From assembly GCA_002269645.1 (NCBI GenBank), contig NIVC01002381.1, forward strand, positions 62,001-126,000: a stretch of DNA of 64,000 nucleotides. Direction: 5' to 3'. Position numbers and translations under genes: made by a program. Within the stretch, counting starts at the first letter, position 1. Each line of letters opens with the position of its first letter. The notes below the pieces were generated by a model. The model saw only the letters and a list, made by a program, of their open reading frames with translations. It made no database searches and was not told where the DNA came from. Source of the DNA: Macrostomum lignano (taxonomy: Eukaryota). This document shows positions 4,801 to 49,936 of this stretch, piece after piece.

Positions 4801-23824
<19,024 letters not shown>

Positions 23825-24864
23825 TCTAAATTTAACTGACAATAATAAATAATAAATTAAATACATATCCGCCGCATACTACTGCTGCTGCGCGAGACTA
23901 CTGCTGAACAAAAATTCTGGCAAAACTTCTGCTAGCGATTTCAATCAATCAATACTGAACTCGGGTTCGCAGTCGGACACACTGATTAGAGCCATTCCTG
24001 TATTGCTACTTGATTTCTTGATCAGAGCTCCCTGCCTGCGCACCCACTAATCACTGCTTTATACACCTCTGCCCCAGCCAGGTGCAATCCGACTTCCTTT
24101 TTGGTCCGTTTTTTTGCTGTCTTCAAGTCTGTCTGATTCGCAATTTTGGTTTTTTTGAGTTTTGTCAGAATTGCAAATTTTATAAATTGATTATTTTGAG
24201 TCAATTCTGTGCAGTAGAACTGTTTTTAACTGATTAGCGCTTTCTTAGCTGAGTGATTCTTCCCCAGTAATCCCCTTCAATTGGTGCTTTGAAATTCATT
24301 TATTCACTGTTTTGTACCTGATTACTATTAGTAATATTTTTATTAATTTGTTACTTTTTCCGCACGGACTGTTTAGTGGACATTTAATAAATAATAATGA
24401 TGATGATAATAGCAACAAATGTTCGCAGGCTCAGGTGCCAATGGAAAAATCGACTCATTCATTTATTATCTGAAAGGTTTCTCCGGCTCTCATCTTGAAG
24501 GTCATGAAGAATTGAACTTTGAGGAAAGCCAGGAAAACGAAAGCCAAAACGAACATTCGCATTTATGACCAAAATTATTAAAGAAAAAATGCGATGTTTG
24601 TTTTTGCTTTCGTTTTCCTGGCTTTCCTCAAACGATGTACCTTACCTTGACTCTGAATTGAACTTTAAAGTGCACAGTCGGTTGGAGTTTTCCTATGGCG
24701 AAACTCTGAAGCCTCTGACAAGTGACGAGAATTGCTTTTGTCAGCCAAAGTTGAGAATTCCCATTTGCCAGCAGTAGATATGGTCTTGCCCATAGACAGG
24801 CAAAAAATGGCCGTCAATCAAATTGATAAATCTGATCTTTACTACATGGAAGTAGATGTTTACC

Positions 24865-26224
24865 GGTTCACTGGTCAGATCGTCATATTCCATTTCGTCA
24901 TATCGGATGACGAAGTGACCAAATATTTTGTTATGCTGGATACTTCGTCATCAACCAATCAGTAAAATGGGGGATGAAAATACCTTTAACGTGGATAACA
25001 ACCATGCACAAAAACTAAACCGGATCAATTGGTATCCTAACTTCGTCATCCACCAATGAGAAAGAAATAGCAAAAAATAGACACCGAGTCTTTTAGATAT
25101 TAAAAAATTTAAAAATATTTTCTTTGCCATGAATTAAAGGATTTTCCACGCAACAGTTTTATACGCACAACGCATATCTTTACAATGCCGGATAAACGTA
25201 GACCGCGAAAGTGCAAGAGACAATTGTGTGCTGCATGCTCAAAAACCGTGCGCAATGATGATGAAGCCATTTCGTGTGACTCATGCAAGAAATTGCAACG
25301 TCGCTGCTGCGGAACAGGTGTGTCGAAAAAAGACTACAATGCTAATAATGCAGGATAAATTCACGTGGATGTGCACTGAGTGCCGGATATCCGAAGCAAA
25401 ATCGCCGCAATCGAATTCGCGATCAGGTCCTGCGTCCGCTCTGGCAGCTGTGCTGCCGAATTGCCACCGACTTTGCCGCCGTCGACTTCGCCGTCAGGTC
25501 CTGCGCTCTCGCAGTCGCCTCCGCTGCCGCCGCCACCGACTTCGCTGCCACCTGCGCCTCATCTGGAAGCAGCACTATCGCCGCCACCTGCGCCTCAGTT
25601 ACTTAAGTATGCATTAATGCCACAACGGTTAGTAACGTCTATGGCTCAGCCAGCTACCATTTTGGATGAGCTGTATTCCTTCCATCTAGAACCCGTCCGC
25701 CATCCTGCGGCTTTTACTGGAAAATCCAATCGAGGGTCCTGAGCCGCAAACCGGTAATTTTCCTGCAGCTGGAATAACCAACGGAGTTTTTGATGAGGAT
25801 CTGCTGGCAAAAGTCATATGAAGTTAAATGAATTCGTGTTTAAGGATTATTTAGCTTTCTATTAAAAAACCTTCCAATTGCAAAACTATCTAATAAAAAT
25901 CCTAAAAAAGCAAAGTCCACGGGGGGTGTGTGTGAGATTTGAGTTAGTGTAAACTATTTTTTGTTTTATTAACTATAAGCTGCGGCAAGCAGAACCGATC
26001 CATCGACAGGTTTTATCAATCGAGATGACAAAATGACTGGGATCATTAGGATTCCAAGTAAATACGTTTAATTGCCACATTAATTCACTTGGAAGTTGAA
26101 ACTAACATGATTGGTGGATGACGAAATGACTCTCTTCAGGTAGTGCATGTTAATTAAGATGACGAAGTGACCCTAGTCGAGGTGAGCACCCCAGACACCT
26201 CAGATGAAGAAATGACTAGGAACC
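24865..26224 (+). mobile_element. Decayed DNA-transposon-like element carrying a frameshifted PHD-finger ORF
   Basis: Imperfect inverted ends GGTTCACTGGTCA / TGACTAGGAACC and multiple inverted GATGACGAARTGAC motifs (16-bp exact inversion TTCGTCATCCACCAAT). The ORF from ATG 25185 reads CAAC..EAISCDSC, then shifts frame to WMCTEC. No TSD was found. Confidence 0.5.
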
Positions 26225-26521
26225 ACCGACTTATATGAGCTAATAATTTAATTTAATAAATTAATAATCGAGGTATCCTTTGTAGTCAAGTTGTTCCTCC
26301 TGAAATTCAGACTGTCGCTCTTTTCATTTCCTTGCTTTTGGCAGTTGGTTACTATACCGACAAACGCCTACATTCCGTTCCTAAAGGCGATGTAAAATTT
26401 AATCGATATTGAGTCTTGACTACGGGCTTCTGACTACAGCGCAGACGCCAAATGTTGCCTGTACCAGCAAGTTGGCTGGTTCGGAACCCCTCCCGAAGGG
26501 TCTTTGACGTGACCGCTCTTT

Positions 26522-27030
26522 TTAAGATACTGAATGAAACTGATTGAAAAACTTTGATGTCAACAAAGCAGGGCATGCAGCTGCCGTCACGTCCTCGAGT
26601 TCGGGCAGGGCTCGCACGAGTCGCACTCGGCCAAAATCGTGCGGTCCTTTTTGACCTCCAGCACTCGGCAGTAGCCTGAGCAGCAGTCCTTGCCGCTCCA
26701 GCACCTGGCAGTAGCCTGAGCAGCAGTCCTTGCCGCTCCAGCACCTGGTGCCGCCTTCTGAGCACGACTTGCTGGATGAGCAGGCCGGTGCCATCTCTAG
26801 CTTTGCAGTGAGGAAAATTGTGTATTTGTATAGATACTTTATATACTTTATATAGAGTCTTTGGGGTTAATGGCCCTCCTGGGTGCGAATGGCTCAGTAT
26901 AACCCACCAGAGCCATGCAATACCTGTACTTGAAAAGAAGTCTCAATTGTCAGTTAATAAATGGCATTGCAAATGCATAAAACAGCTACTCACGCGTAAG
27001 AAGAGTTATGATAATCAAAAAGTTGAACAT
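26522..27030 (-). pseudogene. Knottin-like secreted peptide gene K1, frameshifted by an internal 40-bp tandem duplication
   Basis: Exon 1 is 27030-26994 (MFNFLIIITLLT, phase 1, GTGAGT); exon 2 starts at 26796. Removing the duplication (26667-26706 = 26707-26746) gives ..MAPACSSSKSCSEGGTRCWSGKDCCSGYCRVLEVKKDRTILAECDSCEPCPNSRT*, stop at 26587. Confidence 0.8.
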
Positions 27031-27544
27031 TTGTAATTTAGTGAAGAAGATGGAACTGTGTGCAAAGTGCAGTTGGGTTCGAAGATCGGTGGTACTGAGA
27101 CTACGGACACTTGGCTGCATGATGATGGAGATGGATGGAGAATGATAATTAGGCTTAGTTCTGGCTCAACTGCTGCCATAGACGGTAAAGGCCTGACACA
27201 AATTGAAGAGACAAAGAGAAGGTTCTGTAGCTGCCGGCGGAGACTGTCCCGCCAAGGGCGGGTTTCTTGTCTATGGTAAAAAGTCAAACTTCTCTGTGGC
27301 ACAGTCAACTGCAAGTGCCAGGGGTTCTCAATTCCTCTGCAAGACCTGGTCACTAAAATCTCAAGCTTACATGATGTACTTGCTGCTTGCTTGGAATAGA
27401 ACTGCCCTTTTTACGCAGTTATAGAATTTCTACTGGATACATGTAATTATTGGTCTGAAAGTTGGTAGCGGAAATGAAAGCTTAGCAATCTCTACACACG
27501 GATATATTGCGGCAGAGATCAAAACTGGGTGAAAAGCACAGGCT

Positions 27545-28085
27545 GGGCTGGCGGCAGAGATCAAAGCGGGGCAGCAGGGCACAGGCCGAGTTGCCGGCAG
27601 AGATCAAAGCGGGGCAGCAGGGCACAGGCCGAGTTGGCGGCAGAGATCAAAGCGGGGCAGCAGGGCACAGGCCGAGTTGCCGGCAGAGATCAAAGCGGGG
27701 CAGCAGGGCACAGGCCGAGTTGGCGGCAGAGATCAAAGCGGGGCAGCAGGGCACAGGCCGAGTTGGCGGCAGAGATCAAAGCGGGGCAGCAGGGCACAGG
27801 CCGAGTTGGCGGCAGAGATCAAAGCGGGGCAGCAGGGCACAGGCCGAGTTGGCGGCAGAGATCAAAGCGGGGCAGCAGGGCACAGGCCGAGTTGGCGGCA
27901 GAGATCAAAGCGGGGCAGCAGGGCACAGGCCGAGTTGGCGGCAGAGATCAAAGCGGGGCAGCAGGGCACAGGCCGAGTTGGCGGCAGAGATCAAAGCGGG
28001 GCAGCAGGGCACAGGCCGAGTTGGCGGCAGAGATCAAAGCGGGGCAGCAGGGCACAGGCCGAGTTGGCGGCAGAGATCAGAGCGG
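27545..28085. repeat. 43-bp minisatellite (~12 copies) directly 3' of the K2 stop
   Basis: Unit GCGGCAGAGATCAAAGCGGGGCAGCAGGGCACAGGCCGAGTTG. Confidence 0.95.
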
Positions 28086-28103
28086 AGCAGCAGGCACAGC
28101 AGC

Positions 28104-28428
28104 TCAGGTGCACTCTGCAGTGAACGTCAAGTTCGGCCAGGCCTTGAGCACTCTGCAGTAGTGTGAGCAGCAGTCTTTGCCCGACCAGCAGCTCACTCCG
28201 TTGACCAGACATGGCTCTGTGGCGGGGCAGGCGACTGATGATCTCAAGTCTGCAACAAATTGAGCGGGTAACGGACTGCTCTTTGTTCATTCTAGTCTTG
28301 GTTTTAATTAGGAAATAAAATCGTTATTTACAGTTGATATTAGTCGATAGACTGCCTGAAAACTCACAGATTAGCAGTAAAATGAAGAAAGCAAGCAGAA
28401 GTGACTTCACGGACTGGTGTATTTTCAT
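28104..28428 (-). CDS. Knottin-like secreted peptide K2, 68 aa, 2 exons
   Basis: Exon 1 28428-28368 (GTGAGT donor), exon 2 28249-28104 (TTGCAG acceptor). Protein: MKIHQSVKSLLLAFFILLLIYLRSSVA-CPATEPCLVNGVSCWSGKDCCSHYCRVLKAWPNLTFTAECT*. Confidence 0.88.
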
Positions 28429-28687
28429 GGCTGCGTGATCAAGTTGGCAAACCTGCAAACTGACTTCTTGTGGTGGTCGCTCAAGTGAAGGTGGGTGCCA
28501 AAGCGCATGGCACCGAGAAGTAAATAAAAGTCCTTGTCTTGAAATTGTCTGTGGCTGAAAACCTGTTTCTTGTAAAAGAACAAGACTCTGCTTTTACAAA
28601 TCAAAGAGACCATTCTAAATCAGAATTTATTGCAAAAATTTTATATACCGGTATTTAAAGCAGAAATTTTCAGTGGAAAGAAACCAT

Positions 28688-29462
28688 ATGTCTGGCTGGC
28701 TTATGTTACTCCTGCTGGGCCTCTCCGTCAGCAGCCAACTGATTACATGTGAGTCAGGGAGTTTTCAATGTCAGCGTTGCGCGCCATCATTGTGTTATGA
28801 ACTTTCATGTTCTGAATTCGTGTTCTGAATTTATGTGTCCTGAATCTGTGTTCTGAATTCGTGTTCTGAATTTGTGTCTTCAATCTGTGTTCTGAATTCG
28901 TGTTCTGAATTTGTGTTCAATCTGTGTTCTGAATTCGTGTTCTGAATTTATGTTCTGAATTCGTGTTCTGAATGATCTTGTTCTGAATTCGTGTTCTGAA
29001 TTCGTGTTCTGAATTCGTGTTCTGAATTCGTGTTCTGAATTCGTGTTCTGAATTCGTGTTCTGAATTCGTGTTCTGAATTCGTGTTCTGAATTCGTGTTC
29101 TGAATTCGTGTTCTGAATTCGTGTTCTGAATTCGTGTTCTGAATTCGTGTTCTGAATTCGTGTTCTGAATTCGTGTTCTGAATTAGTGTTCTGAATTAGT
29201 GTTCTGAATTAGTGTTCTGAATTAGTGTTCTGAATTAGTGTTCTGAATTAGTGTTCTGAATTTGTGTTCTGAATTCGTGTTCACGAAGCTTCTTTCCTCC
29301 AATCCAGCAGCGCAGGCCTGCAAGTGCCCCAGGGACCACCGCGGCTGCACCCTGAAGCAGGACGGCCAGGTGTGCGGCCGCGGCAGCGAGTGCTGCTCCC
29401 GATGGTGCCGGCTGAGCTCGGTCGCGTCCGGCATTAACAGGCGAGTCTGCGCGTCCTGCTGA
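28688..29462 (+). CDS. Knottin-like secreted peptide K3, 71 aa, 2 exons
   Basis: Exon 1 28688-28748 (GTGAGT), exon 2 29308-29462 (TCCAG acceptor). Protein: MSGWLMLLLLGLSVSSQLITSAQA-CKCPRDHRGCTLKQDGQVCGRGSECCSRWCRLSSVASGINRRVCASC*. Confidence 0.88.
28806..29281. repeat. 13-bp minisatellite filling the K3 intron (copy at ~37696-38250)
   Basis: Unit GAATTCGTGTTCT, with variant GAATTAGTGTTCT in a 3' block. Confidence 0.95.
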
Positions 29463-29620
29463 TGAAGCTGAGCTGGCACCAGGCTCCCGCGGCCTCATCG
29501 CTTGGGGGGAAGAAACCGCATCACTAGTGCATGCATGTATTGTAATAAGTTCACTGTTTTATACTCTGTTCATTTTAAATACACAAGTTACCGCAACAAA
29601 TCAGTACATTTTAGTACAGT

Positions 29621-32600
29621 ATCAAGTTCTACCTGGAGTACAAGCCTATGCTGCTCAACGACCTGCTGCAGGTGGGGCTGGGGACTGAATCTGGCATTGC
29701 ATGATGCCGCTTCATCTTGGGAGATGCAGGAATGAGAGTTATAAGAAGTGTGAAAAGTGCGAATGTGATAGCATTGAATAGGGTGAGATGGGGATGAGAG
29801 AGGGTGAGATAAGATGAGACAGGGTGAGATGAGCTGAGAGAGGGTGAGATGGGGATAAGAGAGGGTGAGATGGGGATGAGAGAGGGTGAGATAAGATGAG
29901 ACAGGGTGAGATGAGAGAGGGTGAGATGGGGATGAGAGAGGGTGAGATAAGATGAGACAGGGTGAGATGAGATGAGAGAGGGTGAGATGGGGATGAGAGA
30001 GGGTGAGATAAGATGAGACAGGGTGAGATGAGATGAGAGAGGGTGAGATGGGGATGAGAGAGGGTGAGATAAGATGAGAGAGGGTGAGATGGGGATGAGA
30101 GAGGGTGAGATGAGATGAGAGAGGGTGAGATGGGGATGAAAGAGGGTGAGATGGGGATGAGAGAGGGTGAGATGGAGATGAGAGAGGGTGAGATAGAGAT
30201 GAGAGAGGGTGAGATGGGGATGAGAGAGGGTGAGATAGGGATGAGATAGGGATGAGAGAGGGTGAGATAGGGATGAGAAAGGGTGAGATAGGGATGAGAG
30301 AGGGTGAGATGAGGTTGAGAGGGTGAGATAGGGATGAGAGAGGGTGAGATGGGGATGAAAGAGGGTGAGATGGGGATGAGAGAGGGTGAGATGGAGATGA
30401 GAGAGGGTGAGATAGAGATGAGAGAGGGTGAGATGGGGATGAGAGAGGGTGAGATAGGGATGAGATAGGGATGAGAGAGGGTGAGATAGGGATGAGAAAG
30501 GGTGAGATAGGGATGAGAGAGGGTGAGATGAGGTTGAGAGGGTGAGATAGGGATGAGAGAGGGTGAGATGGGGATGAGAGAGGGTGAGATATGGATGAGA
30601 GAGTGTGAGATTGGGATGAAAAAAAGTGAGAGAGTTGAGAATGAAGCCCGAGAGAAAAGGACACTCACATGAAAACAAACCGCAGTCCACATCACAGAAA
30701 ACTCGCACCCCTGCCCAGGTGATGACCCCCCGCCTGGACCACACCCGCACCGTGAGCTACTTCACCAAGGAGGGCAAGCTGGCCATGGTGAAGCCCTACC
30801 TGAAGCAGGTGCAGCAGGTGAACAACAAGCAGGTGAACGAGGCCTTGAACTCGCTGTACATCCAGGAGGAGGACTTCCAGAGCCTGCGCGCGTCAATTGA
30901 GGCGTTTGGCAACTTTGACAACATCGGGCTGGCGCAGAAGTGCGAGAAGCACGAGCTGCTGGAGTTCAGGCGCATCGCCGCCCTGCTGTACAAGAGCAAC
31001 AACCGGTTCGGCCAGAGCGTGGAGCTGTGCAAGCGGGACCGGCTGTACAAGGACGCCATGCAGTTCGCCTCGGACTCCAAGGACCCCGAGCTGGCCGCCT
31101 CCCTGCTGCAGTGGTTTGTTGACGAGCGCCTGTCGCACTGCTTCGCCGCCTGCCTGTACCAGTGCTACGACCTGCTGAAGGCCGACCGCGTCCTGGAGCT
31201 GGCTTGGAGATTCAACCTGATGGACTTCGCCATGCCGTTCCTCATCCAGGTCATGGCTGAGACTCAGAACCGCCTAGATAAGCTGGAGCACGCTGAGGCC
31301 GTGCGGGCTGAGCATGATGAGGAGGCTGAGACTGAGCCCAGTCCCATTGTGATGCCAGGTGAGTGTCTGATCTCATGGTGAGTGTCTGTCTGATCCCAAG
31401 GTTGCTATGCCAGGTGAGTTTCTCATCCCATGGTTGCTATGCCAGGTGAGTTTCTGATCCCAAGGTTGCTATGCCAGGTGAGTTTCTCATCCCAAGGTTG
31501 CTATGCCAGGTGAGTGTCTAATTCCATAGTTGCTATACCAGGTGAGAGTCTGTCTGATCCCAAGGTTGCTATGCCAGATGAGTGTCTAATCCTATAGTTG
31601 CTATGCCAGGTGAGTGTCTAATCCTATAGTTGCTATGCCAGGTGAGTGTCTAATCCTATGGTTGCTATGCCAGGTGAGAGTCTGTCTGATCCCATGGTTG
31701 CTATGCCAGGTGAGTGTCTAATCCTATGGTTGCTATGCCAGGTGAGAGTCTGTCTGATCCCATGGTTGCTATGCCAGGTGAGTGTCTAATCCCATGGTTG
31801 CTATGCCAGGTGAGTGTCTAATCACAAGGTTGCTATGCCAGGTGAGTGTCTAATCCCATGGTTGCTATGCCAGGTGAGTGTCTAATCCCATGGTTGCTAT
31901 GCCAGGTGAGTGTCGAATCACAAAGTTGCTATGCCAGGTGAGTGTCTAATCACAAGGTTGCTATGCCAGGTGAGTGTCTAATCACAAGGTTGCTATGCCA
32001 GGTGAGTGTCTAATCCCATGGTTGCTATGCCAGGTGAGTGTCTAATCCCATGGTTGCTATGCCAGGTGAGTGTCTAATCCCATGGTTGCTATGCCAGGTG
32101 AGTGTCTAATCACAAGGTTGCTATGCCAGGTGAGTGTCTAATCACAAGGTTGCTATGCCAGGTGAGTGTCTAATCCCATGGTTGCTATGCCAGGTGAGTG
32201 TCTAATCCCATGGTTGCTATGCCAGGTGAGTGTCTAATCACAAGGTTGCTATGCCAGGTGAGTGTCTAATCACAAGGTTGCTATGCCAGGTGAGTGTCTA
32301 ATCCCATGGTTGCTATGCCAGGTGAGTGTCTAATCCCATGGTTGCTATGCCAGGTGAGAGTCTGTCTGATCCCACGGTTGCTATCTCAGTTGAGTGTCTG
32401 ATCCCATGGTTGCTATGCCAGGTGAGCAAAAGTCCCCAATCCCCTATTAATCCCCTGCTCATCTGTCACCTGGCTGCCATCCAAACTTCTTTCGCCCATC
32501 AAAGCGCAGCGATTGAAGGATTTCTGACAGCCAAGACGAATCCCCAGAAGGGGGGGGCACTGAAACGAATCCTGTCGGTCGGCCTCGGGCTTGCAAATAT

Positions 32601-32843
32601 CGACACGATAAAGACTTTGCCCACAGGCCTCCCATAGGGAATTTTGATTTCTATTACTGGACCCAGGGCGCCTTGGGATTGATGTTATAAGCTATTGCTA
32701 CTATCAGTAGCATTATTCGGCCCGCCCGCAGCGAACCCCATGCTGATGCTGACTGGCCCCGGCCAGCAGGCCATGGCACCGCCGCCCCCGCCGGCATGGG
32801 CTACCCGGGCGGCTTCTACCCTGGCGTGCCGCCGCAGTTTTAA
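29621..32843 (+). pseudogene. Duplicated 3' fragment of clathrin heavy chain (last 51 nt of exon 12, exon 13', exon 14')
   Basis: Exon 13' (30719-31358) is 640 nt and in frame. Exon 14' (32732-32843) is 112 nt, one G short of copy 1. There is no 5' part or promoter. Confidence 0.9.
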
Positions 32844-33882
32844 TCTAAATTTAACTGACAATAATAAATAATAAATTAAATACATATCCGCCGCATACTA
32901 CTGCTGCTGCGCGAGACTACTGCTGAACAAAAATTCTGGCAAAACTTCTGCTAGCGATTTCAATCAATCAATACTGAACTCGGGTTCGCAGTCGGACACA
33001 CTGATTAGAGCCATTCCTGTATTGCTACTTGATTTCTTGATCAGAGCTCCCTGCCTGCGCACCCACTAATCACTGCTTTATACACCTCTGCCCCAGCCAG
33101 GTGCAATCCGACTTCCTTTTTGGTCCGTTTTTTTGCTGTCTTCAAGTCTGTCTGATTCGCAATTTTGGTTTTTTGAGTTTTGTCAGAATTGCAAATTTTA
33201 TAAATTGATTATTTTGAGTCAATTCTGTGCAGTAGAACTGTTTTTAACTGATTAGCGCTTTCTTAGCTGAGTGATTCTTCCCCAGTAATCCCCTTCAATT
33301 GGTGCTTTGAAATTCATTTATTCACTGTTTTGTACCTGATTACTATTAGTAATATTTTTATTAATTTGTTACTTTTTCCGCACGGACTGTTTAGTGGACA
33401 TTTAATAAATAATAATGATGATGATAATAGCAACAAATGTTCGCAGGCTCAGGTGCCAATGGACTTATCGACTCATTCATTTATTATCTGAAAGGTTTCT
33501 CCGGCTCTCATCTTGAAGGTCATGAAGAATTGAACTTTGAGGAAAGCCAGGAAAACGAAAGCCAAAACGAACATTCGCATTTATGACCAAAATTATTAAA
33601 GAAAAAATGCGATGTTTGTTTTTGCTTTCGTTTTCCTGGCTTTCCTCAAACGATGTACCTTACCTTGACTCTGAATTGAACTTTAAAGTGCACAGTCGGT
33701 TGGAGTTTTCCTATGGCGAAACTCTGAAGCCTCTGACAAGTGACGAGAATTGCTTTTGTCAGCCAAAGTTGAGAATTCCCATTTGCCAGCAGTAGATATG
33801 GTCTTGCCCATAGACAGGCAAAAAATGGCCGTCAATCAAATTGATAAATCTGATCTTTACTACATGGAAGTAGATGTTTACC

Positions 33883-35242
33883 GGTTCACTGGTCAGATCG
33901 TCATATTCCATTTCGTCATATCGGATGACGAAGTGACCAAATATTTTGTTATGCTGGATACTTCGTCATCAACCAATCAGTAAAATGGGGGATGAAAATA
34001 CCTTTAACGTGGATAACAACCATGCACAAAAACTAAACCGGATCAATTGGTATCCTAACTTCGTCATCCACCAATGAGAAAGAAATAGCAAAAAATAGAC
34101 ACCGAGTCTTTTAGATATTAAAAAATTTAAAAATATTTTCTTTGCCATGAATTAAAGGATTTTCCACGCAACAGTTTTATACGCACAACGCATATCTTTA
34201 CAATGCCGGATAAACGTAGACCGCGAAAGTGCAAGAGACAATTGTGTGCTGCATGCTCAAAAACCGTGCGCAATGATGATGAAGCCATTTCGTGTGACTC
34301 ATGCAAGAAATTGCAACGTCGCTGCTGCGGAACAGGTGTGTCGAAAAAAGACTACAATGCTAATAATGCAGGATAAATTCACGTGGATGTGCACTGAGTG
34401 CCGGATATCCGAAGCAAAATCGCCGCAATCGAATTCGCGATCAGGTCCTGCGTCCGCTCTGGCAGCTGTGCTGCCGAATTGCCACCGACTTTGCCGCCGT
34501 CGACTTCGCCGTCAGGTCCTGCGCTCTCGCAGTCGCCTCCGCTGCCGCCGCCACCGACTTCGCTGCCACCTGCGCCTCATCTGGAAGCAGCACTATCGCC
34601 GCCACCTGCGCCTCAGTTACTTAAGTATGCATTAATGCCACAACGGTTAGTAACGTCTATGGCTCAGCCAGCTACCATTTTGGATGAGCTGTATTCCTTC
34701 CATCTAGAACCCGTCCGCCATCCTGCGGCTTTTACTGGAAAATCCAATCGAGGGTCCTGAGCCGCAAACCGGTAATTTTCCTGCAGCTGGAATAACCAAC
34801 GGAGTTTTTGATGAGGATCTGCTGGCAAAAGTCATATGAAGTTAAATGAATTCGTGTTTAAGGATTATTTAGCTTTCTATTAAAAAACCTTCCAATTGCA
34901 AAACTATCTAATAAAAATCCTAAAAAAGCAAAGTCCACGGGGGGTGTGTGTGAGATTTGAGTTAGTGTAAACTATTTTTTGTTTTATTAACTATAAGCTG
35001 CGGCAAGCAGAACCGATCCATCGACAGGTTTTATCAATCGAGATGACAAAATGACTGGGATCATTAGGATTCCAAGTAAATACGTTTAATTGCCACATTA
35101 ATTCACTTGGAAGTTGAAACTAACATGATTGGTGGATGACGAAATGACTCTCTTCAGGTAGTGCATGTTAATTAAGATGACGAAGTGACCCTAGTCGAGG
35201 TGAGCACCCCAGACACCTCAGATGAAGAAATGACTAGGAACC
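33883..35242 (+). mobile_element. Second copy of the PHD-bearing transposon relic
   Basis: Near-identical to 24865-26224. Confidence 0.5.
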
Positions 35243-35539
35243 ACCGACTTATATGAGCTAATAATTTAATTTAATAAATTAATAATCGAGGTATCCTTTG
35301 TAGTCAAGTTGTTCCTCCTGAAATTCAGACTGTCGCTCTTTTCATTTCCTTGCTTTTGGCAGTTGGTTACTATACCGACAAACGCCTACATTCCGTTCCT
35401 AAAGGCGATGTAAAATTTAATCGATATTGAGTCTTGACTACGGGCTTCTGACTACAGCGCAGACGCCAAATGTTGCCTGTACCAGCAAGTTGGCTGGTTC
35501 GGAACCCCTCCCGAAGGGTCTTTGACGTGACCGCTCTTT

Positions 35540-36048
35540 TTAAGATACTGAATGAAACTGATTGAAAAACTTTGATGTCAACAAAGCAGGGCATGCAGCT
35601 GCCGTCACGTCCTCGAGTTCGGGCAGGGCTCGCACGAGTCGCACTCGGCCAAAATCGTGCGGTCCTTTTTGACCTCCAGCACTCGGCAGTAGCCTGAGCA
35701 GCAGTCCTTGCCGCTCCAGCACCTGGCAGTAGCCTGAGCAGCAGTCCTTGCCGCTCCAGCACCTGGTGCCGCCTTCTGAGCACGACTTGCTGGATGAGCA
35801 GGCCGGTGCCATCTCTAGCTTTGCAGTGAGGAAAATTGTGTATTTGTATAGATACTTTATATACTTTATATAGAGTCTTTGGGGTTAATGGCCCTCCTGG
35901 GTGCGAATGGCTCAGTATAACCCACCAGAGCCATGCAATACCTGTACTTGAAAAGAAGTCTCAATTGTCAGTTAATAAATGGCATTGCAAATGCATAAAA
36001 CAGCTACTCACGCGTAAGAAGAGTTATGATAATCAAAAAGTTGAACAT
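35540..36048 (-). pseudogene. K1' (duplicate of K1, same 40-bp duplication)
   Basis: Exon 1 36048-36012; exon 2 from 35814; duplication at 35685-35764. Confidence 0.8.
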
Positions 36049-36559
36049 TTGTAATTTAGTGAAGAAGATGGAACTGTGTGTGCAAAGTGCAGTTGGATTC
36101 GAAGATCGGTGGTACTGAGATCCGGACACTTGGCTGCATGATGATGGAGATGGATGGAGAATGATAATCAGGCTTAGTTCTGGCTCAACTGCTGCCATAG
36201 ACGGTAAAGGCCTGACACAAATTGAAGAGACAAAGAGAAGGTTCTGTAGCTGCCGGCGGAGACTGTCCCGCCAAGCATGGATTTCTTGTCTATGGTAAAA
36301 AGTCAAACTTCTCTGTGGCACAGTCAACTGCAAGTGCCAGGGGTTCTCAATTCCTCTGCAAGACCTGGTCACTAAAATCTCAAGCTTATTTTTTTTACTT
36401 GCTGCTTGCTTGGAATAGAACTGCCCTTTTTACGCAGTTATAGAATTTCTATTGGATACATGTAATTATTGGTCTGAAAGTTGGTAGCGGAAATGAAAGC
36501 TTAGCAATCTCTACACACGGATATATTGCGGCAGAGATCAAAACGGGGTGAAAAGCACA

Positions 36560-36975
36560 GGCTGGGCTGGCAGCAGAGATCAAAGCGGGACAGCAGGGTA
36601 CAGGCTGGGCTGGCGGCAGAGATCAAAGCGGGGCAGCAGGGTACAGGCTGGGCTGGCGGCAGAGATCAAAGCGGGGCAGCAGGGTACAGGCTGGGCTGGC
36701 GGCAGAGATCAAAGCGGGGCAGCAGGGTACAGGCTGGGCTGGCGGCAGAGATCAAAGCGGGGCAGCAGGGTACAGGCTGGGCTGGCGGCAGAGATCAAAG
36801 CGGGGCAGCAGGGTACAGGCTGGGCTGGCGGCAGAGATCAAAGCGGGGCAGCAGGGTACAGGCTGGGCTGGCGGCAGAGATCAAAGCGGGGCAGCAGGGT
36901 ACAGGCTGGGCTGGCGGCAGAGATCAAAGCGGGGCAGCAGGGTACAGGCTGGGCTGGCGGCAGAGATCAAAGCGG
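36560..36975. repeat. 43-bp minisatellite (~9 copies), a variant unit relative to copy 1
   Basis: Unit GCGGCAGAGATCAAAGCGGGGCAGCAGGGTACAGGCTGGGCTG. Confidence 0.95.
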
Positions 36976-36993
36976 AGCAGCAGGCACAGCAGC

Positions 36994-37318
36994 TCAGGTG
37001 CACTCTGCAGTGAACGTCAAGTTCGGCCAGGCCTTGAGCACTCTGCAGTAGTGTGAGCAGCAGTCTTTGCCCGACCAGCAGCTCACTCCGTTGACCAGAC
37101 ATGGCTCTGTGGCGGGGCAGGCGACTGATGATCTCAAGTCTGCAACAAATTGAGCGGGTAACGGACTGCTCTTTGTTCATTCTAGTCTTGGTTTTAATTA
37201 GGAAATAAAATCGTTATTTACAGTTGATATTAGTCGATAGACTGCCTGAAAACTCACAGATTAGCAGTAAAATGAAGAAAGCAAGCAGAAGTGACTTCAC
37301 GGACTGGTGTATTTTCAT
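36994..37318 (-). CDS. K2' knottin-like peptide (duplicate of K2)
   Basis: Exons 37318-37258 and 37139-36994; same protein as K2. Confidence 0.88.
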
Positions 37319-37576
37319 GGCTGCGTGATCAAGTTGGCAAACCTGCAAACTGACTTCTTGTGGTGGTCGCTCAAGTGAAGGTGGGTGCCAAAGCGCATGG
37401 CACCGAGAAGTAAATAAAAGTCCTTGTCTTGAAATTGTCTGTGGCTGAAAACCTGTTTCTTGTAAAAGAACAAGACTCTGCTTTTACAAATCAAAGAGAC
37501 CATTCTAAATCAGAATTTATTGCAAAAATTTTATATACCGGTATTTAAAGCAGAAATTTTCAGTGGAAAGAAACCA

Positions 37577-38431
37577 ATGTCTGGCTGGCTTATGTTACTC
37601 CTACTGGGCCTCTCCGTCAGCAGCCAACTGATTACATGTGAGTCAGGGAGTTTTCAATGTCAGCGTTGCGCGCCATCATTGTGTTATGAACTTTCATGTT
37701 CTGAATTCGTGTTCTGAATTTATGTGTCCTGAATCTGTGTTCTGAATTCGTGTTCTGAATTTATGTGTCCTGAATCTGTGTTCTGAATTCGTGTTCTGAA
37801 TTTGTGTCTTCAATCTGTGTTCTGAATTCGTGTTCTGAATTTGTGTTCAATCTGTGTTCTGAATTCGTGTTCTGAATTTATGTTCTGAATTCGTGTTCTG
37901 AATGATCTTGTTCTGAATTCGTGTTCTGAATTCGTGTTCTGAATTCGTGTTCTGAATTCGTGTTCTGAATTCGTGTTCTGAATTCGTGTTCTGAATTCGT
38001 GTTCTGAATTCGTGTTCTGAATTCGTGTTCTGAATTCGTGTTCTGAATTCGTGTTCTGAATTCGTGTTCTGAATTCGTGTTCTGAATTCGTGTTCTGAAT
38101 TCGTGTTCTGAATTCGTGTTCTGAATTCGTGTTCTGAATTCGTGTTCTGAATTCGTGTTCTGAATTCGTGTTCTGAATTAGTGTTCTGAATTAGTGTTCT
38201 GAATTAGTGTTCTGAATTAGTGTTCTGAATTAGTGTTCTGAATTCGTGTTCACGAAGCTTCTTTCCTCCAATCCAGCAGCGCAGGCCTGCAAGTGCCCCA
38301 GGGACCACCGCGGCTGCACCCTGAAGCAGGACGGCCAGGTGTGCGGCCGCGGCAGCGAGTGCTGCTCCCGATGGTGCCGGCTGAGCTCGGTCGCGTCCGG
38401 CATTAACAGGCGAGTCTGCGCGTCCTGCTGA
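37577..38431 (+). CDS. K3' knottin-like peptide (duplicate of K3)
   Basis: Exons 37577-37637 and 38277-38431; same protein as K3, with a synonymous CTG/CTA change in exon 1. Confidence 0.88.
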
Positions 38432-38585
38432 TGAAGCTGAGCTGGCACCAGGCTCCCGCGGCCTCATCGCTTGGGGGGAAGAAACCGCATCACTAGTGCA
38501 TGTATTGAATAAGTTCACTGTTTTATACTCTGTTCATTTTAAATACACAAGTTACCGCAACAAATCAGTACATTTTAGTACAGTA

Positions 38586-41138: not shown

Positions 41139-42587
41139 TTAAACGGCTGTTGAATATAATTTACAATTTACGAGAAAACTCACAGTTTTATCATTTTCTG
41201 GCTTAAGATATTCCTTGATCCAATTTTTGTCCAGTTGATCCAGACCGGCTGCTCCAGATGCTTCCTCAATTTGTCTTCTTTTGTGCTGGGACACAAAACG
41301 TAAGCTCGGTAGCCGCTCAGCTGCCTCCTTCATCCGGCGAATGCCCTCGGCGGGATCTTGGCCGCTGACCAGGAGAAAGCGGCCGAACTCGAACCGGACG
41401 TGAAGCCTCGTCTTGTTGCTGTCTGCAGCAGCCTGCTCTTCGAGGGCTTCGTATCTCTCACGAAGTTCGACCTTGTCGACAGCTTCTTCATTCTCATTCA
41501 GACCCAGCAGCCTCAGCTGGGCCCAGGTGTTTGTTAGATCGACTTTTTGCAGCAAGTATCTGGCTTTCTGGATTCTGTCCTCGCCAGCATCTTTTGTTTT
41601 GATGAAGTACAGAGCGCACTGGAAAGCGAAATCGCTCTTCAGGAACTCGCTATCTGACAGAGTCTCGCCAGTCTTCAAAACCTTCAGCTCCTTGTTCTTG
41701 AGCCTTTTCTTGAGAATTTGGTCCTGGTCTCCTTGGATTGGCACTTTCTTCCACTGCACCATTTTTGTCAGTCCGCGATAGACTTTGCAGCAGGTGATGT
41801 ATACCTGGAGGTGCTCGCCTGCAAACTGAACCGCCTCATCTGCCAGCTGCTCAGACTTGTTGAAATGAACAGCGGAGTACGCGAGGGCCTCAGCGAACCG
41901 AGCCAGAAACATCGGGTGCTGGACTTTACATTTGTCCAGAATCCTCTTAGCCTCATCCCACAGCTCCACTCTTTCCTCTCCAATCTCAGCACTGAGGTCC
42001 GCCTGACGCCTCTGCATGGCCATCGCCTCTGCCAGACCGAAGCGCCAGTGGAAGCTCTGGACCGACTGCTCCAGATGGTGCTCCACCTCCAGCTTCAGGG
42101 CCTCCCGGAACGCCTTCGCGGCCTCCTCCAGCTGCTGCCTCCCGAAGCTGAGCAGAGTCCAGCCTTTGGCGCCCCAGACTGAGGCCCGGACCTGCGGCTT
42201 CTGCCACTCATCAGAGAGCTTCTGAAGCATCATCTGCTCTTGCTGCTCATCTGGGTGGAATTTGTTCATCAGGTGCAGCTCCGTGGCCTCGATCAGGAAG
42301 GCCACATCCATGGTTAAAGGTGAATTAGCATTCAAATCCAGCTTTGCTTCGTTAAGGTACTTCAGACACCGTGCTTCATCACCAGGTTGCTCCAGCATGT
42401 GCACGTAGACCAGACTCAGCAGGTGCAGCCCCTTTAGTCCGAGCTGGGTGTCCATCCTGCCTTGCAAGCTGCTGACGAGTCTGTCGATGCTCTCTGGGCT
42501 CTCGGCAAGTTTCGGCCTCCACTGGAAGTGACACGGAACCTCGCCCAGGCTCTTGAAAGACTCCGCTGGATTGTTGAGTTCCGCCAT
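41139..42587 (-). CDS. IFIT-like (interferon-induced TPR family / TTC22-like) protein, 482 aa, single coding exon
   Basis: From MAELNN. Motifs parallel vertebrate IFITs: SLGEVPCHFQW (cf. SLEQLRCHFTW), GLHLLSLVYVH, KGWTLLSFGRQQLEEAAKAFREAL (cf. [24 protein letters not shown]), LHVRFEFGRF (cf. IHFHYGRF). Acceptor-like sites lie upstream of the ATG. Confidence 0.8.
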   Translation of the reverse strand: MAELNNPAESFKSLGEVPCHFQWRPKLAESPESIDRLVSSLQGRMDTQLGLKGLHLLSLVYVHMLEQPGDEARCLKYLNEAKLDLNANSPLTMDVAFLIEATELHLMNKFHPDEQQEQMMLQKLSDEWQKPQVRASVWGAKGWTLLSFGRQQLEEAAKAFREALKLEVEHHLEQSVQSFHWRFGLAEAMAMQRRQADLSAEIGEERVELWDEAKRILDKCKVQHPMFLARFAEALAYSAVHFNKSEQLADEAVQFAGEHLQVYITCCKVYRGLTKMVQWKKVPIQGDQDQILKKRLKNKELKVLKTGETLSDSEFLKSDFAFQCALYFIKTKDAGEDRIQKARYLLQKVDLTNTWAQLRLLGLNENEEAVDKVELRERYEALEEQAAADSNKTRLHVRFEFGRFLLVSGQDPAEGIRRMKEAAERLPSLRFVSQHKRRQIEEASGAAGLDQLDKNWIKEYLKPENDKTVSFLVNCKLYSTAV

Positions 42588-45559: not shown

Positions 45560-46140
45560 GGTCCATAGACACGGACAGGTGAGGTCCTTAAACACGGATA
45601 CACGGGGTCAATAGACAAGGACAGGAGGGGTCAGGTGGGATCTATAGATACGGACAGAAGGGTCAGGTGGGGTCCATAGACATGGTCAGGCGGGATCCAT
45701 AGACATGGACAGGTGGGGTCCATAGACATGGACAGGAGGGGTCATATGGGGCCCATAGACATGGATAGGAGGGGTCAGGTGGGTCCATAGACATGGACAG
45801 GGGTCAGGTGGGGTCCATAGACATGAACAGGAGGGGTCCATAGACATGGACAGGAGGGGTCCATAGACATGGACAGGCGGGGTCAGGTAGGCTCCATAGA
45901 CATGGACAGGCGAGGTCAGGTAGGCTCCATAGACACGGACAGGCGGGGTCATGTAGGCTCCATAGACACGGACAGGCGGGGTCAGGTAGGCTCCATAGAC
46001 ATGGACAGGTGGGGTCAGGTAGGCTTCATAGACACGGACAGGCGGGGTCAGGTAGGCTCCATAGACACGGACAGGCGGGGTCATGTAGGCTCCATAGACA
46101 CGGACAGGCGGGGTCAGGTGGGGTCCATAGACATGGACAG
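45560..46140. repeat. ~30-33-bp minisatellite overlapping the zinc-finger stop codon
   Basis: Unit GGGTCCATAGACATGGACAGGCGGGGTCAGGT. Confidence 0.9.
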
Positions 46141-46938
46141 GCGGCGCGCGTGGGCCCGCAGGTGGCGCACCAGGTCGCCGGGGCGCTGGAAGCCGCGCGG
46201 GCAGATCACGCAGTCGAGTCGGCGACCGGCGGCGATGGCGTCTTCGTCCTCGTGCGCCCGCCGGTGGCTGTCCAGGTGGCTGCGGCGGGCGAAGCGGTGC
46301 TGGCAGAGGTCACACTGGAACGGCCGCTCGTTGGCGTGCAGGCGGCGGTGGCTCAGCAGGGAGCCGCTCTGGGCGAAGCTGCGGCCGCACTGGGCGCAGG
46401 CGAACGGCCGCTCGCCAGAGTGCGTGCGGCGGTGGCGGGACAGGTCGGTGTTGCGCGGGAACTGCCGGCCGCACTGGTCGCAGCTGAACGGGCGCTCGTC
46501 GGTGTGCCGGGCCCGCAGATGGCTGCGCAGGTTGCTGAGGCGGGCGAAGCTGGACGGGCACTGCTCGCAGCTGAAGGGCCGCTCGCCGCTGTGCACCCGC
46601 ATGTGGCTGCTGAGGTGGCTCCGCTGGCCGAAGGCGAGGCCGCAGTCGCCGCAGCGGTGCGGTTTCGCGTGGCTCCGCCGATGCCGAGACAGCTGGCGGA
46701 GCTCCGGGAAGCGGCGCGGACAGTCCGGACAGCTGAACTGCTCGGCCGCGGCGGCCTCCATGGCGTCAGGCGGCTGGCGCTGGTCAGGCGCGGACTGCCG
46801 ATCCTCAGTGTGCGGCGGCTGCTGCTGCAAGTCGGGCATGGCGGGGCGGGGGTCAGAGACCAGCTGCTCAGCCGCGGTGTGCATATATTGGGGCCGGCAG
46901 CGGCTCACATGCCGGCTCACTGTGTGGCAATGCGCCAT
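46114..46938 (-). CDS. C2H2 zinc-finger protein with 7 fingers
   Basis: Seven CX2CX12HX3-4H units, several with SGERPF/DERPF linkers. The start codon is uncertain because a TGA lies immediately upstream of ATG 46938. Confidence 0.9.
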   Translation of the reverse strand: MAHCHTVSRHVSRCRPQYMHTAAEQLVSDPRPAMPDLQQQPPHTEDRQSAPDQRQPPDAMEAAAAEQFSCPDCPRRFPELRQLSRHRRSHAKPHRCGDCGLAFGQRSHLSSHMRVHSGERPFSCEQCPSSFARLSNLRSHLRARHTDERPFSCDQCGRQFPRNTDLSRHRRTHSGERPFACAQCGRSFAQSGSLLSHRRLHANERPFQCDLCQHRFARRSHLDSHRRAHEDEDAIAAGRRLDCVICPRGFQRPGDLVRHLRAHARRLSMSMDPT

Positions 46939-47449
46939 TCACATTTCTGCTGCAGTCCCCACCTCACTGAGCTCTGCTCACAGCTCTCAACACTTCCTCG
47001 GACCACCCGGGCCAAGGTGGCTTTTTTCTAACTGCTGCTTTTTTATCGGCCTGCCGCGCTATCTTGCTGGGCCTCCCTCTCTCTCTCTCTCGCTCAGACC
47101 ACTGGCAGCAATCTATGGGAACACCTGTGGAACACCTGCCAGAAGTGAGACGTCCTTTTTTATTAAAAAAAATGGGTGAGCAGGGTGTTCTTCATTTGCC
47201 GATAACTCCGCTAGCTCAGCTAAAATATGCCAAATAAACAAGCAATGTGAAAGACGCACAGGTGTATTGAAATAAAAATAGGGCATGAAACAAAAGTGAA
47301 ATTGAATAGGAAATCAAAGCGTGTATTTGCCATCGGCCTGGCTGTGGCCAAGCAGAGCGATTCGTACATTGCGAGCTCAGCTCGGCAGGCCATGAAGTCA
47401 CTGGGTGCCGCAGCATTAGCTGGATATGAATGAAACTGGCTGCCGCAGC

Positions 47450-49936
47450 TCACACGGGCTTCGTGACCATCAGAGCAGCTGACGGGCACAGGTCCAGCGT
47501 GTACAGCGGCTTCTCCATGTCCTCAGCGGTGAACACCCGCTTTGGGAACAGCGTCATAAGGGCGAAGTCCTCACCAGCCCGGCCGTCTGTCCGGTTGGTT
47601 CGAACGTAGCAGGCCACCGCCGCGAGGCTCTCCTTGGCGCCGAACTGGGTAGTGAGCGGCTGGCCGCCGCCCGGCAGGCGGATCTGCAGCCGGCAGGTGT
47701 CGCCGTCCGACACCGCGGCGGGGGTCGCCGCCTTCGGCAGGCTCGGGCCAGACGGCGCGCCAGCGGCAGCCGCAGGGGCAGCCGGTTGACCCGCGGCCGC
47801 TCGGCGCTCTTCGGCTTCGCGCGCCTCCATCTCGGCGCGGTCCTGCGCGTAGCGCTGCCTAATGCGCGCCAGGTACTCGCGCTGCTCCTCCTTCTCGCGC
47901 CGGCGCGCCTCGGCCTCGCGCTTTAACTCCTGCTCAGCGGACTCCTCGCGCCACTTTTTGAGGCCTTTGCCGTCCGTGCGCCGCTTCCGCTCGCGCTCCA
48001 GCTCCGCCCGGCGCTCCTCAGCCTCCCGCTCTTGGCGCTTCGCCTCCAGCTTGGCCTCCAGCTGGCGCAGCTGCTCCGCCTTCTCCTCGGCTGTCAGGGC
48101 GCGGACCTGCGGTTAGGGCGGGGCGGATTCTGCTTGAGAGCTGAGATGGGGGCGGATTTTGGTTGAGAGCTGAGATGGGGGCGGATTTTGGTTGAGAGCT
48201 GAGATGGGGGCGGATTTTGGTTGAGAGCTGAGATGGGGGCGGATTTTGGTTGAGAGCTGAGATGGGGGCGGATTTTGGTTGAGAGCTGAGATGGGGGCGG
48301 ATCATCCGCTAGTTGGGGGCGGATTATCCGCTAGTTGGGGCGGATCATCCGCTAGTTGGGGGCGGATCATCCGCTAGTTGGGGGCGGATCATCCGCTAGT
48401 TGGGGGCGGATCATCCGCTAGTTGGGGGCGGATCATCCGCTAGTTGGGGGCGGATCATCCGCTAGTTGGGGGCGGATCATCCGCTAGTTGGGGGCGGATC
48501 ATCTGCTAGTTGGGGGCGGATCATCCGCTAGTTGGGGGCAGTGGCGGATCTGGCATTAGATAATGAGTTCGCTGACATTAACAGCCCTTCCCCAGCTGCT
48601 CACCTCCTCCGTGGACTGGGAGAAGTTGGCGTGGCCGGTCTTGGCGGCGTGGAATTCGGCCTCGGCCGGGCTGCGGAACAACTTGCCGCAGTCGTCGCAC
48701 TTCAAAGATTTTGCATCGGCATCGGTGGCCTCCGCCGAGCCGGCGGTGCCTCCCGCCGACTCTCCTGACGCCGCCGACGAAGCAGCTGCCGCGTTGGCTG
48801 CCGGCGCGGGCTCCGGTTCCGGGATCGGGTCGTCAATATCCGGGTCATCCTGGTGGCTGGACAGCCTGCGGAATTTCCGAGGAAAAAGCAGAGTTAGGCA
48901 ATGTTGGCATTGCCGAGTCAGCTGGGGTAAGATCGCTACTTGGTTAGAGGCGATTCTCAGCTGAGGTCAGATGGCGGTTCTCATGGTGAGATCGGGGGGC
49001 GATTCTCATGGTGAGATCAGGGGAGGATTCTCATGGTGAGATCAGGGGGCGATTCTCATGGTTAGATCAGTGGGCAATTCTCATGGTGAGATCAGGGGGC
49101 GATTCTCATGGTGAGATCAGGGGGCGATTCTCATGGTGAGATCAGGGGAGGATTCGCATGGTGAGGTCAGGGGGCGATTCTCATGGTGAGATCAGGGGAG
49201 GATTCGCATGGTGAGGTCAGTGGGCAATTCTCATGGTGAGATCAGGGGGCAATTCTCATGGTGAGATCAGGGGGCAATTCTAATGGTTAGATCAGGGGGC
49301 GATTATCATGGTGAGATCAGGGGGCGATTCTCATGGTGAGATCAGGGGAGGATTCGCATGGTGAGGTCAGGGGGCGATTCTCATGGTGAGATCAGGGGAG
49401 GATTCGCATGGTGAGGTCAGGGAGCGATTCTCATGGTGAGATCAGGGAGCGATTCTCATGGTGAGATCAGGGAGCGATTCTCATGGTGAGATCAGGGAGC
49501 GATTCTTATGGTGAGATCAGTAGGCGGTTCTCAGGTGGTATCAGGTGTCAGTATGGTCAGGGTGGATCCTCGGTTGATGTCAGAGAGTGACTTTGGTCTA
49601 TCAAAATTCAAAGCCAAAATCGACAAACTAAATAAGTTATTACATTGTTACGATATTACTTGTAATATTAGTATACTCGTACTAATTAAACCAGCAAAAA
49701 CATGAGTTGGAGAAACTTGAAGTAATACAATGGACTTACCAGTCCATTGCTGCTTCAATCCCTTTGTTCCCCGACTTCAACAGAGCTTTTTTTCTAAAAA
49801 TAAAAGACAAAATAACGATTTCACTGGCAATGTAGCTTGTAGACATAGCAAGTGATTTATTTGGCATTTCTTACGCTCTGATTTCGGAGAAACCCATGTC
49901 TAAGAGCATGCTCAGGTTGGAGTCATTGGATGACAT
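47450..49936 (-). CDS. UBXN1: UBX domain protein 1 (UBA - C2H2 - coiled coil - UBX), 344 aa, 4 exons
   Basis: Exons 49936-49875, 49793-49740, 48865-48604 and 48106-47450 total 1035 nt. UBA [30 protein letters not shown]; zinc finger LKCDDCGK..EFHAAKTGH; UBX CRLQIRLPGG..FALMTLFPKRVF. AATAAA on the minus strand at 47164-47159. Confidence 0.93.
48120..48540. repeat. Two adjacent minisatellites (29 bp and 22 bp) in UBXN1 intron 3
   Basis: Units CGGATTTTGGTTGAGAGCTGAGATGGGGG and CGGATCATCCGCTAGTTGGGGG. Confidence 0.9.
48965..49520. repeat. 25-bp minisatellite in UBXN1 intron 2
   Basis: Unit ATTCTCATGGTGAGATCAGGGGGCG. Confidence 0.9.

Follow-up and report, generated by a model that had tools for sequence, protein, structure and literature searches.

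Peptides with the inhibitor cystine knot (ICK) or knottin fold, in which the six core cysteines pair I-IV, II-V and III-VI and the third bond threads the ring, are best known from venoms and plant defence. One of them is omega-hexatoxin-Hv1a (omega-atracotoxin-Hv1, PDB 1AXH; PF06357), an ICK toxin from a funnel-web spider which acts on insect calcium channels, and which has the framework C-x6-C-x5-CC-x3-C-x13-C and a long C-terminal beta-hairpin. The framework VI/VII peptides of the Conus O-superfamily (PF02950, PF08087) are also small and secreted, and combine a C-C-CC-C-C array with the ICK fold. A knottin fold has also been described for UPF0506 (PF11703), a family restricted to the Platyhelminthes, found in schistosomes and cestodes and part of the secretome in Schistocephalus (PMC8400842), while mussels (Mytilus) have MgCRP-I, a multi-copy family confined to their lineage that combines a C-C-CC-C-C array with a phase-1 intron within the signal peptide and includes pseudogenised members (PMC4558851). 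Here we describe four genes, K1 to K4, from the flatworm Macrostomum lignano, which probably are lineage-restricted two-exon genes for secreted knottin-like peptides. They lie in a window of 64,000 nucleotides (the whole stretch of DNA analysed; assembly Mlig_3_7, GCA_002269645.1, contig NIVC01002381.1, positions 62001-126000), where K1, K2 and K3 form a 3-kb cluster at 26522-29462, in repeat-rich eukaryotic DNA and directly downstream of a clathrin heavy-chain gene, and K4 is 26 kb distant. A paralogous M. lignano contig (NIVC01000107.1, here L001) served as comparison copy of the region. The cluster is real and lineage-restricted: one member is annotated and transcribed, two are unannotated but intact, and the fourth is broken in this contig.

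Three of the genes, K2, K3 and K4, are intact and have two exons, a hydrophobic signal exon and a Cys-rich one. The intron is in phase 1 in all four genes, is of the GTRAGT...AG type, and is positioned 4-7 codons ahead of the first cysteine. The gene models are given below in window coordinates, with a slash marking the splice junction and the residue of the split codon in brackets:

K1 exon 1, 26994-27030, minus strand: MFNFLIIITLLT and the first base of the split codon, with the signal-peptide core; donor cgc/GTGAGT
K1 intron, 26797-26993, minus strand: 197 nt, phase 1, GT...ctag/AG
K1 exon 2 as it stands, 26522-26796, minus strand: 103-aa product, TAA at 26524-26522
K2 exon 1, 28368-28428, minus strand: MKIHQSVKSLLLAFFILLLI and 1 base; donor tct/GTGAGT
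K2 intron, 28250-28367, minus strand: 118 nt, phase 1, GTGAGT...ttgttgcag
K2 exon 2, 28104-28249, minus strand: (Y)LRSSVACPATEPCLVNGVSCWSGKDCCSHYCRVLKAWPNLTFTAECT and stop; a second in-frame acceptor is found 15 nt downstream
K3 exon 1, 28688-28748, plus strand: MSGWLMLLLLGLSVSSQLIT and 1 base; donor cat/GTGAGT
K3 intron, 28749-29307, plus strand: 559 nt, phase 1, mostly a 13-bp x 37 repeat (28804-29282); acceptor ccaatccag
K3 exon 2, 29308-29462, plus strand: (S)AQACKCPRDHRGCTLKQDGQVCGRGSECCSRWCRLSSVASGINRRVCASC and stop
K4 exon 1, 55983-56025, minus strand: MRLLFFLFCLLVII and 1 base; donor tca/GTAAGT
K4 intron, 55197-55982, minus strand: 786 nt, phase 1, with a 33-bp x 17 minisatellite (55394-55949); acceptor ttttaag
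K4 exon 2, 55060-55196, minus strand: (N)SASTCLRDRCKATGTECAQSDSDCCSGICSMVAIRNRKKVFRCA and stop; ATTAAA 104 nt past the stop
Spacer between K2 and K3, 28429-28687: 259 bp between the divergent start codons, TATA-like sequences at -46 and -36 of the K3 ATG
Tandem array, 27509-28099: 43 bp x 13.8, immediately 3' of the K2 stop, in the presumed 3' untranslated region

Upstream of each Cys-rich exon we looked for an exon that starts with ATG, encodes a hydrophobic core and has a GTRAGT donor splicing in frame; 4000 random anchor codons served as control. Such an exon was present for all four Cys exons (4/4), versus 5.9% of the random anchors. Similarly, the Cys framework has five occurrences in the window (K2, K3 and K4, and the second copies K2' and K3' described below) versus none in 300 second-order Markov simulations, and the K pattern exceeds the chance expectation. 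An earlier note on this DNA had given K1, K2 and K3 one shared two-exon architecture, which is exact for K2 and K3, and for K1 stands with regard to exon 1 and the phase-1 intron, but not with regard to an intact exon 2, which is disrupted by a 40-bp duplication. An alternative K1 acceptor (caaag/ctag) was rejected as out of frame, and two other candidates were rejected as genes, i.e. the long plus-strand open reading frames (ORFs) at 27507-28166 and a Cys-pattern match at 36501-36665, both of which are frames through the 43-bp tandem repeat.

K3 was known already as GenBank PAA90593.1 (UniProt A0A267GX33; P0121 in our protein library), "hypothetical protein BOX15_Mlig024546g1" of M. lignano, with no family assignment, and there is a second model, PAA58382.1 (BOX15_Mlig024546g2; P0172), on a different contig, NIVC01002381.1, the deposited sequence of which matches window 27514-48431 with 100% identity. 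The predicted 71-aa K3 precursor is identical to PAA58382.1, and is one residue off PAA90593.1, at the acceptor. This difference (ITSAQAC versus ITSQAC) is due to two tandem (NAGNAG) acceptors 3 nt apart, at 29307/29308 and 29310/29311 (ccag/cag/CG), with one annotated model using each. Since the Mlig_3_7 gene set was built from StringTie/TACO RNA-seq assemblies, TBONE and TransDecoder (PMC5730564), the two annotated models are transcript evidence for the predicted K3 splice. When a profile built from the four K peptides was run exhaustively with HMMER against 1.84 billion representative proteins, PAA90593.1 was the sole full-length match (E=4.8e-13); a word-indexed protein search gave zero candidates with K2, and K3 alone with the family profile. 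Counterparts of K1, K2 and K4 were found in neither of the protein libraries searched, and no gene is called for them on either contig. The genes had been presented as hidden and as an undescribed family: the former is correct for K1, K2 and K4, but neither is correct for the annotated K3, although the deposited protein has no family assigned to it.

The cysteine framework is C-x5-C-x6-C-x5-CC-x3-C-x14-C in K2, C-x1-C-x6-C-x8-C-x5-CC-x3-C-x13-C-x2-C in K3 and C-x4-C-x6-C-x6-CC-x3-C-x13-C in K4. The six-cysteine knottin array C-x6/8-C-x5/6-CC-x3-C-x13/14-C is thus present in K2, K3, K4 and the L001 copy of K1, and is lost from the window K1 by frameshift. The pattern proposed previously, C-x6/8-C-x5-CC-x3-C-x13/14-C, holds for the core of K2 and K3, but leaves out one to three further cysteines and does not fit the window K1, where the last loop is x44. 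All four genes have hydrophobic cores with 8-residue Kyte-Doolittle means of 3.0-3.7, which by this heuristic indicates secretory precursors, and small residues are found at -3/-1 of the first cysteine: APA/C (K1), SVA/C (K2), AQA/C (K3) and (S)AST/C (K4), with the slash here marking the predicted cleavage site. The four signal peptides share no sequence, and the first cysteine directly follows the predicted cleavage site, without a propeptide. Counted past this site there are 7 cysteines in K2 and K4, 8 in the intact K1 and 9 in K3; cleavage after the first cysteine instead would leave 6 (K2), 8 (K3) and 6 (K4), which would make K2 and K4 canonical six-cysteine knottins. The parity of the cysteines in K2, K3 and K4 bears on possible dimerisation.

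With regard to the fold, both the sequence profile and the predicted structure give good support to the knottin reading. When the family profile was searched against all PDB sequences, 16 matches were obtained at E<=10, of which 14 are ICK peptides, with Xt3a as the best (E=5e-5), omega-atracotoxin-Hv1 (1axh) aligned end to end, and bidentatide, U3-SYTX, delta-conotoxin TxVIA, SVIB, theraphotoxins and ALO3 among the others; a phmmer search of the PDB sequences with K2 gave a chance antibody light-chain match alone. The AlphaFold2 model of K4 (predicted local distance difference test, pLDDT, 84.5) has a C-terminal beta-hairpin, and all eight of its Foldseek matches (8/8) are ICK toxins; the best, on which the model superposes, is 1AXH (probability 1.00, template modelling scores 0.69/0.76, root-mean-square deviation 1.8 A over 37 residues, 30% identity). 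The 50 non-self matches in the protein library are multi-repeat knottin-like proteins of wasps (Cotesia "Venom protein"; Microplitis), the gastropod Babylonia and metagenome records, and a Pfam scan of 51 library proteins assigned Conotoxin_I2 (20), UPF0506 (18), Conotoxin (12), Toxin_29 (10) and Omega-toxin (5). The ICK pattern recognised in the earlier note is borne out by the PDB matches, by the K4 model and by these library matches, which mostly belong to knottin Pfam families. None of K1-K4 has a Pfam match above threshold, and the Pfam check which had been suggested does not place them in a known family; the sub-threshold matches are to knottin-type toxin families and UPF0506, with the exceptions of MotB_plug (K2 signal peptide) and Big-defensin (K3).

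The divergence of the loops against conserved cysteine spacing and intron phase had been observed correctly, while the likeness to toxin radiations which had been drawn from it does not hold, as the four K signals are unrelated to one another and K1 and K2 show no sign of positive selection. In these two genes the central block, CWSGKDCCSxYCRVL, has a nonsynonymous divergence (dN) of 0.14 and a synonymous divergence (dS) of 0.56; its amino acids are kept despite synonymous changes, and it is held by purifying selection. In the loops dN is 0.70 and dS is saturated. Between K1 and K2 overall, dN/dS is ~0.37. Judged from these sequences, the K genes are old paralogues under constraint, rather than a demonstrably fast-evolving arsenal.

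Several observations weigh against the interpretation of K1-K4 as a family of secreted knottin-like peptides. The AlphaFold2 model of K2 is of low confidence (pLDDT 57.8; its best match is also 1axh, E=0.43), and AlphaFold is known to mis-pair cysteines in framework VI/VII-type peptides, while the C-C-CC-C-C framework can also yield mini-granulin folds (PMC11035057). In Mytilus CRP-I the same C-C-CC-C-C array belongs to a different family, for which neither toxic nor antimicrobial activity could be detected (PMC4558851). The odd cysteine counts of K2, K3 and K4 (7, 9 and 7) are unusual for a simple knottin, and with a net charge ranging from 0 (K1, K2) to +6 (K3) the family is not uniformly like antimicrobial peptides. 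Furthermore, K1, K2 and K4 are absent from the RNA-seq-based GenBank annotation and from both protein libraries, and there is no expression or in situ hybridisation (ISH) record of Mlig024546 in the M. lignano supplementary tables, which were covered in part. The absence from the annotation is only weak evidence against expression of K1, K2 and K4, because transcripts judged non-coding or overlapping repeats were left out of the deposited gene set (PMC5730564).

Of the other explanations, the one that survives best is that K1-K4 belong, as diverged members, to UPF0506, the knottin-domain family of flatworms, which we consider somewhat unlikely. The host is a platyhelminth, as the described distribution of this family requires (PMC8400842), and in Schistosoma mansoni a upf0506 gene marks the parenchyma specifically. 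K2 scores 22.1 bits on PF11703 (E=2e-4), and K1 and K4 about 15.7 bits (15.8 and 15.6, respectively). All these scores are below the gathering cut-off of 23.2 bits, however, and K3 has no match; of the 59 positions of the domain, only 32-57 (K2), 32-55 (K1) and 26-55 (K4) are covered, 25-57 at most. The same half of the model is passed by proteins from outside the flatworms, i.e. a Cotesia venom protein (P0130, 28.7 bits) and a metagenome protein from ENA (P0124, 30.2 bits), and the match is thus to the generic ICK motif C-x6-C-x5-CC-x3-C, not to a family-specific signature. The UPF0506 link suggested in the earlier note is not upheld by these scores.

In the window, the K1 frame is lost right after CC-x3-C, due to a duplication within exon 2:

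Tandem duplication, 26656-26748: 40 bp, 2.3 copies, inside K1 exon 2

This gives a last loop of 44 residues (C-x5-C-x6-C-x5-CC-x3-C-x44-C), and position 26522, where the cluster had been taken to start, is the end of the frameshifted product. The x14 loop is restored only by removing one 40-bp copy, with the stop then at 26589-26587. In L001 the 40-bp unit is single, and K1 encodes an undamaged precursor of 62 aa that has 8 cysteines (C-x5-C-x6-C-x5-CC-x3-C-x14-C-x2-C); the gene is followed by AATAAA. This signal is missing from the window copies of K1, where ~79 bp of 3' flank are deleted (26522-26796 versus L001 7930-8350). There are nine substitutions between the window and L001 in K1, versus zero in K2 and K3, and the best interpretation of the window K1 is that it was disabled recently. 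The TGA stop of the L001 K1 is TGC in the window, an extra Cys codon, and decay or divergence has taken a different course in each of the two paralogous copies of K1.

K1, K2 and K3 are present twice in the window, in a tandem duplication which starts within a clathrin heavy-chain exon and has the clathrin 3' exons and K1-K3 in each unit:

Tandem segmental duplication, 20821-38585: unit A 20821-29620 and unit B 29621-38585, ~9 kb, 98.4% identical
K1' (unit B), 35540-36048, minus strand: no difference from K1, the frameshifting 40-bp duplication being present here too
K2' (unit B), 36994-37318, minus strand: identical to K2
K3' (unit B), 37577-38431, plus strand: exon 1 37577-37637, exon 2 38277-38431, one synonymous difference

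K3' is the copy annotated as BOX15_Mlig024546g2 (coding sequence 37514-38431). The seven loci counted previously are all there, with K1', K2' and K3' at 35540-38431 and K4 at 55060-56025; they represent four distinct genes, and the three near-identical tandem copies may reflect assembly redundancy. L001 carries a single unit instead of the tandem pair, and K2, K3, their introns and the spacer are identical between unit A and L001, so that a comparison of these copies is uninformative about selection. The deposited clathrin model (1683 aa) extends to ~32871, which puts the unit-A K1-K3 inside its last intron, while the clathrin on the single-unit contig NIVC01000107.1 has 1674 aa. A protein search with a clathrin exon reached 77-78% identity at most over the full query, to vertebrate clathrins among others, in a library that seemed to lack the clathrin of this window. 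The second unit may reflect true structural variation between subgenomes, or an assembly error at a 21-bp minisatellite (20980-21600 / 29780-30619). The copy numbers of the minisatellites at 27509-28099, 28804-29282 and 55394-55949 vary among unit A, unit B and L001, and the arrays generate long spurious ORFs.

That K3 is the sole working gene, with K1, K2 and K4 untranscribed relics and the count of seven loci inflated by assembly redundancy, is unlikely in our view. It would be consistent with K3 being the only annotated gene (on two contigs), with the frameshift and lost AATAAA of K1, and with the near-identity of units A and B, next to a single unit on the paralogous contig and 180 Mb of the M. 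lignano assembly in blocks at least 95% identical (PMC5730564). Against this, in K2 and K4 the ORF is intact, the splice sites fit the consensus and no core cysteine has been lost, although dS between the paralogues is >1, and the K2 coding sequence is the same in three copies. The annotation filter mentioned above would also hit genes that are this short and flanked by repeats: the 43-bp array (x 14) directly follows K2, the K3 and K4 introns are mostly minisatellite, and these arrays may explain why K genes were filtered from the annotation.

Quite improbable, as we see it, is that the K peptides combine the same framework with a non-knot fold, either mini-granulin or another disulfide isomer (as with TxVIIB, Vc7.2 and mussel CRP-I), and have no toxin-like activity. 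Framework VI/VII is no guarantee of an ICK fold, and in MgCRP-I the array and the phase-1 signal-peptide intron go together with a separate family without measured activity; the low confidence of the K2 model fits this as well, and the extra cysteines could re-pair. However, mini-granulin folding is tied to short loops of 2-4 residues (PMC11035057), whereas the K loops are 6/5-6/0/3/13-14, as in omega-hexatoxin-Hv1a, and the confident K4 model matches ICK structures only. That the K peptides are seminal-fluid peptides of the prostate gland, transferred at mating, is very unlikely: it would follow by inference only from the many small, secreted, lineage-specific prostate transcripts of M. lignano (PMC5977470). 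Mlig024546 was not found in the sections covered of the supplementary files to the seminal-fluid ISH screen, and a compiled list of transcripts tested by ISH does not include it either; K1 and K2 show purifying, not accelerated, evolution.

If the K genes do encode secreted knottin-like peptides, the precursor would enter the endoplasmic reticulum co-translationally, and the signal-peptidase cut would fall at an A-x-A-type site, immediately ahead of the first cysteine or right behind it, without a propeptide to be removed. The mature product, of 40-47 residues and 4.4-5.1 kDa, is predicted to fold into a knot of three disulfides and to end in a long beta-hairpin. The additional cysteines could form a fourth disulfide (L001 K1; K3) or be free for an intermolecular bond (K2, K4), and the odd thiol in K2 (7), K3 (9) and K4 (7) could mean dimers. 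The products would most likely be stable, extracellular binding ligands. As M. lignano is fed diatoms in culture, a role as prey-capture toxin seems unlikely, and since the net charge spans 0 to +6, a uniform antimicrobial mechanism is not obvious. The parenchyma-specific upf0506 gene and the mussel analogue without measurable activity also caution against reading "toxin" from the fold. A full-text literature search for Mlig024546 found no paper. Our guess is that defence at the surface or in mucus, either antimicrobial or by anti-predator channel blocking, is the least unlikely role, while seminal-fluid or purely endogenous roles are also possible. As a long shot, the K peptides might be platyhelminth-specific knottins, in which an extra and possibly unpaired N-terminal cysteine serves covalent dimerisation or tethering in secreted defence, which would represent an independent origin of an omega-hexatoxin-like peptide outside venomous animals.

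Elsewhere in the window, the following features were observed:

Long terminal repeat (LTR) retrotransposon pol, 186-3802, minus strand: RVT_1, RT_RNaseH and integrase core, 65-70% GC
Intronless 482-aa ORF (MAELNNPAESF...), 41139-42587, minus strand: no Pfam match and no exact product on record, a possible lineage-specific or unannotated gene
274-aa C2H2 zinc-finger ORF with at least five fingers, 46114-46938, minus strand: in a 66% GC island, overlapped by long plus-strand ORFs

Most of the other window DNA has a GC content of 31-56%, with 46001-48000 also at ~66%, and an Rfam scan of the whole window gave no match. A mariner-type transposase (HTH_48/Transposase_1, 353 aa) at L001 16445-17807 is absent from the window at ~43837, and represents an insertion difference between the copies of the region.

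The biology of the K genes is unsurprising in kind, as lineage-specific C-C-CC-C-C families recur (Mytilus CRP-I being an example) and their functions are often elusive. There is, however, a gap in the annotation, with K1, K2 and K4 missing from the deposited gene set and K3 labelled only as "hypothetical protein". M. lignano is the only flatworm in which transgenesis is known to be routine, and the K family in this species would offer a compact and tractable test of the roles of knottins in a non-venomous animal.

Finally, we compared the K peptides with the known families. Omega-hexatoxin-Hv1a, the nearest structural match of the K4 model, has loops of 6, 5, 0, 3 and 13 residues, equal to the K core lengths. 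None of the K peptides matches PF06357 (cut-off 22 bits) at E<=10, which leaves them outside that family, and they differ from the spider toxin in having one to three extra cysteines and no propeptide, in the phase-1 intron in the signal peptide, and in their non-venomous flatworm host. The highest Pfam score of K1, K2 and K4 is on UPF0506, a family from the same phylum which is secreted and Cys-rich, but its Schistocephalus member is longer, has two modules and has the spacing C-x6-C-x7-CC-x4-C-x9-C, unlike the K peptides. In the case of the Conus O-superfamily, the scores are below the Pfam cut-offs (PF02950, 8.0-11.4 versus 25.1 bits; PF08087, 14.4 versus 24.3 bits and for K4 only; E 0.04-7.5), and the conotoxin superfamilies have a conserved signal peptide and a propeptide, whereas the K signals are mutually unrelated and there is no pro-region, which sets the K peptides apart from this superfamily as well. 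The K genes resemble MgCRP-I in being lineage-restricted and multi-copy, in the cysteine array, in the phase-1 intron within the signal peptide and in including a disabled member. However, the MgCRP-I genes are split into four exons and encode a conserved pre-pro region that ends in a dibasic site, and the spacing is C(x3-6)C(x1-7)CC(x3-4)C(x3-5)C (PMC4558851). The K genes, with two coding exons, a last loop of 13-14 residues and no pro-region, do not belong to this family. Both the conotoxins and Mytilus CRP-I combine a conserved signal with a hypervariable mature peptide, and the K peptides are the opposite.

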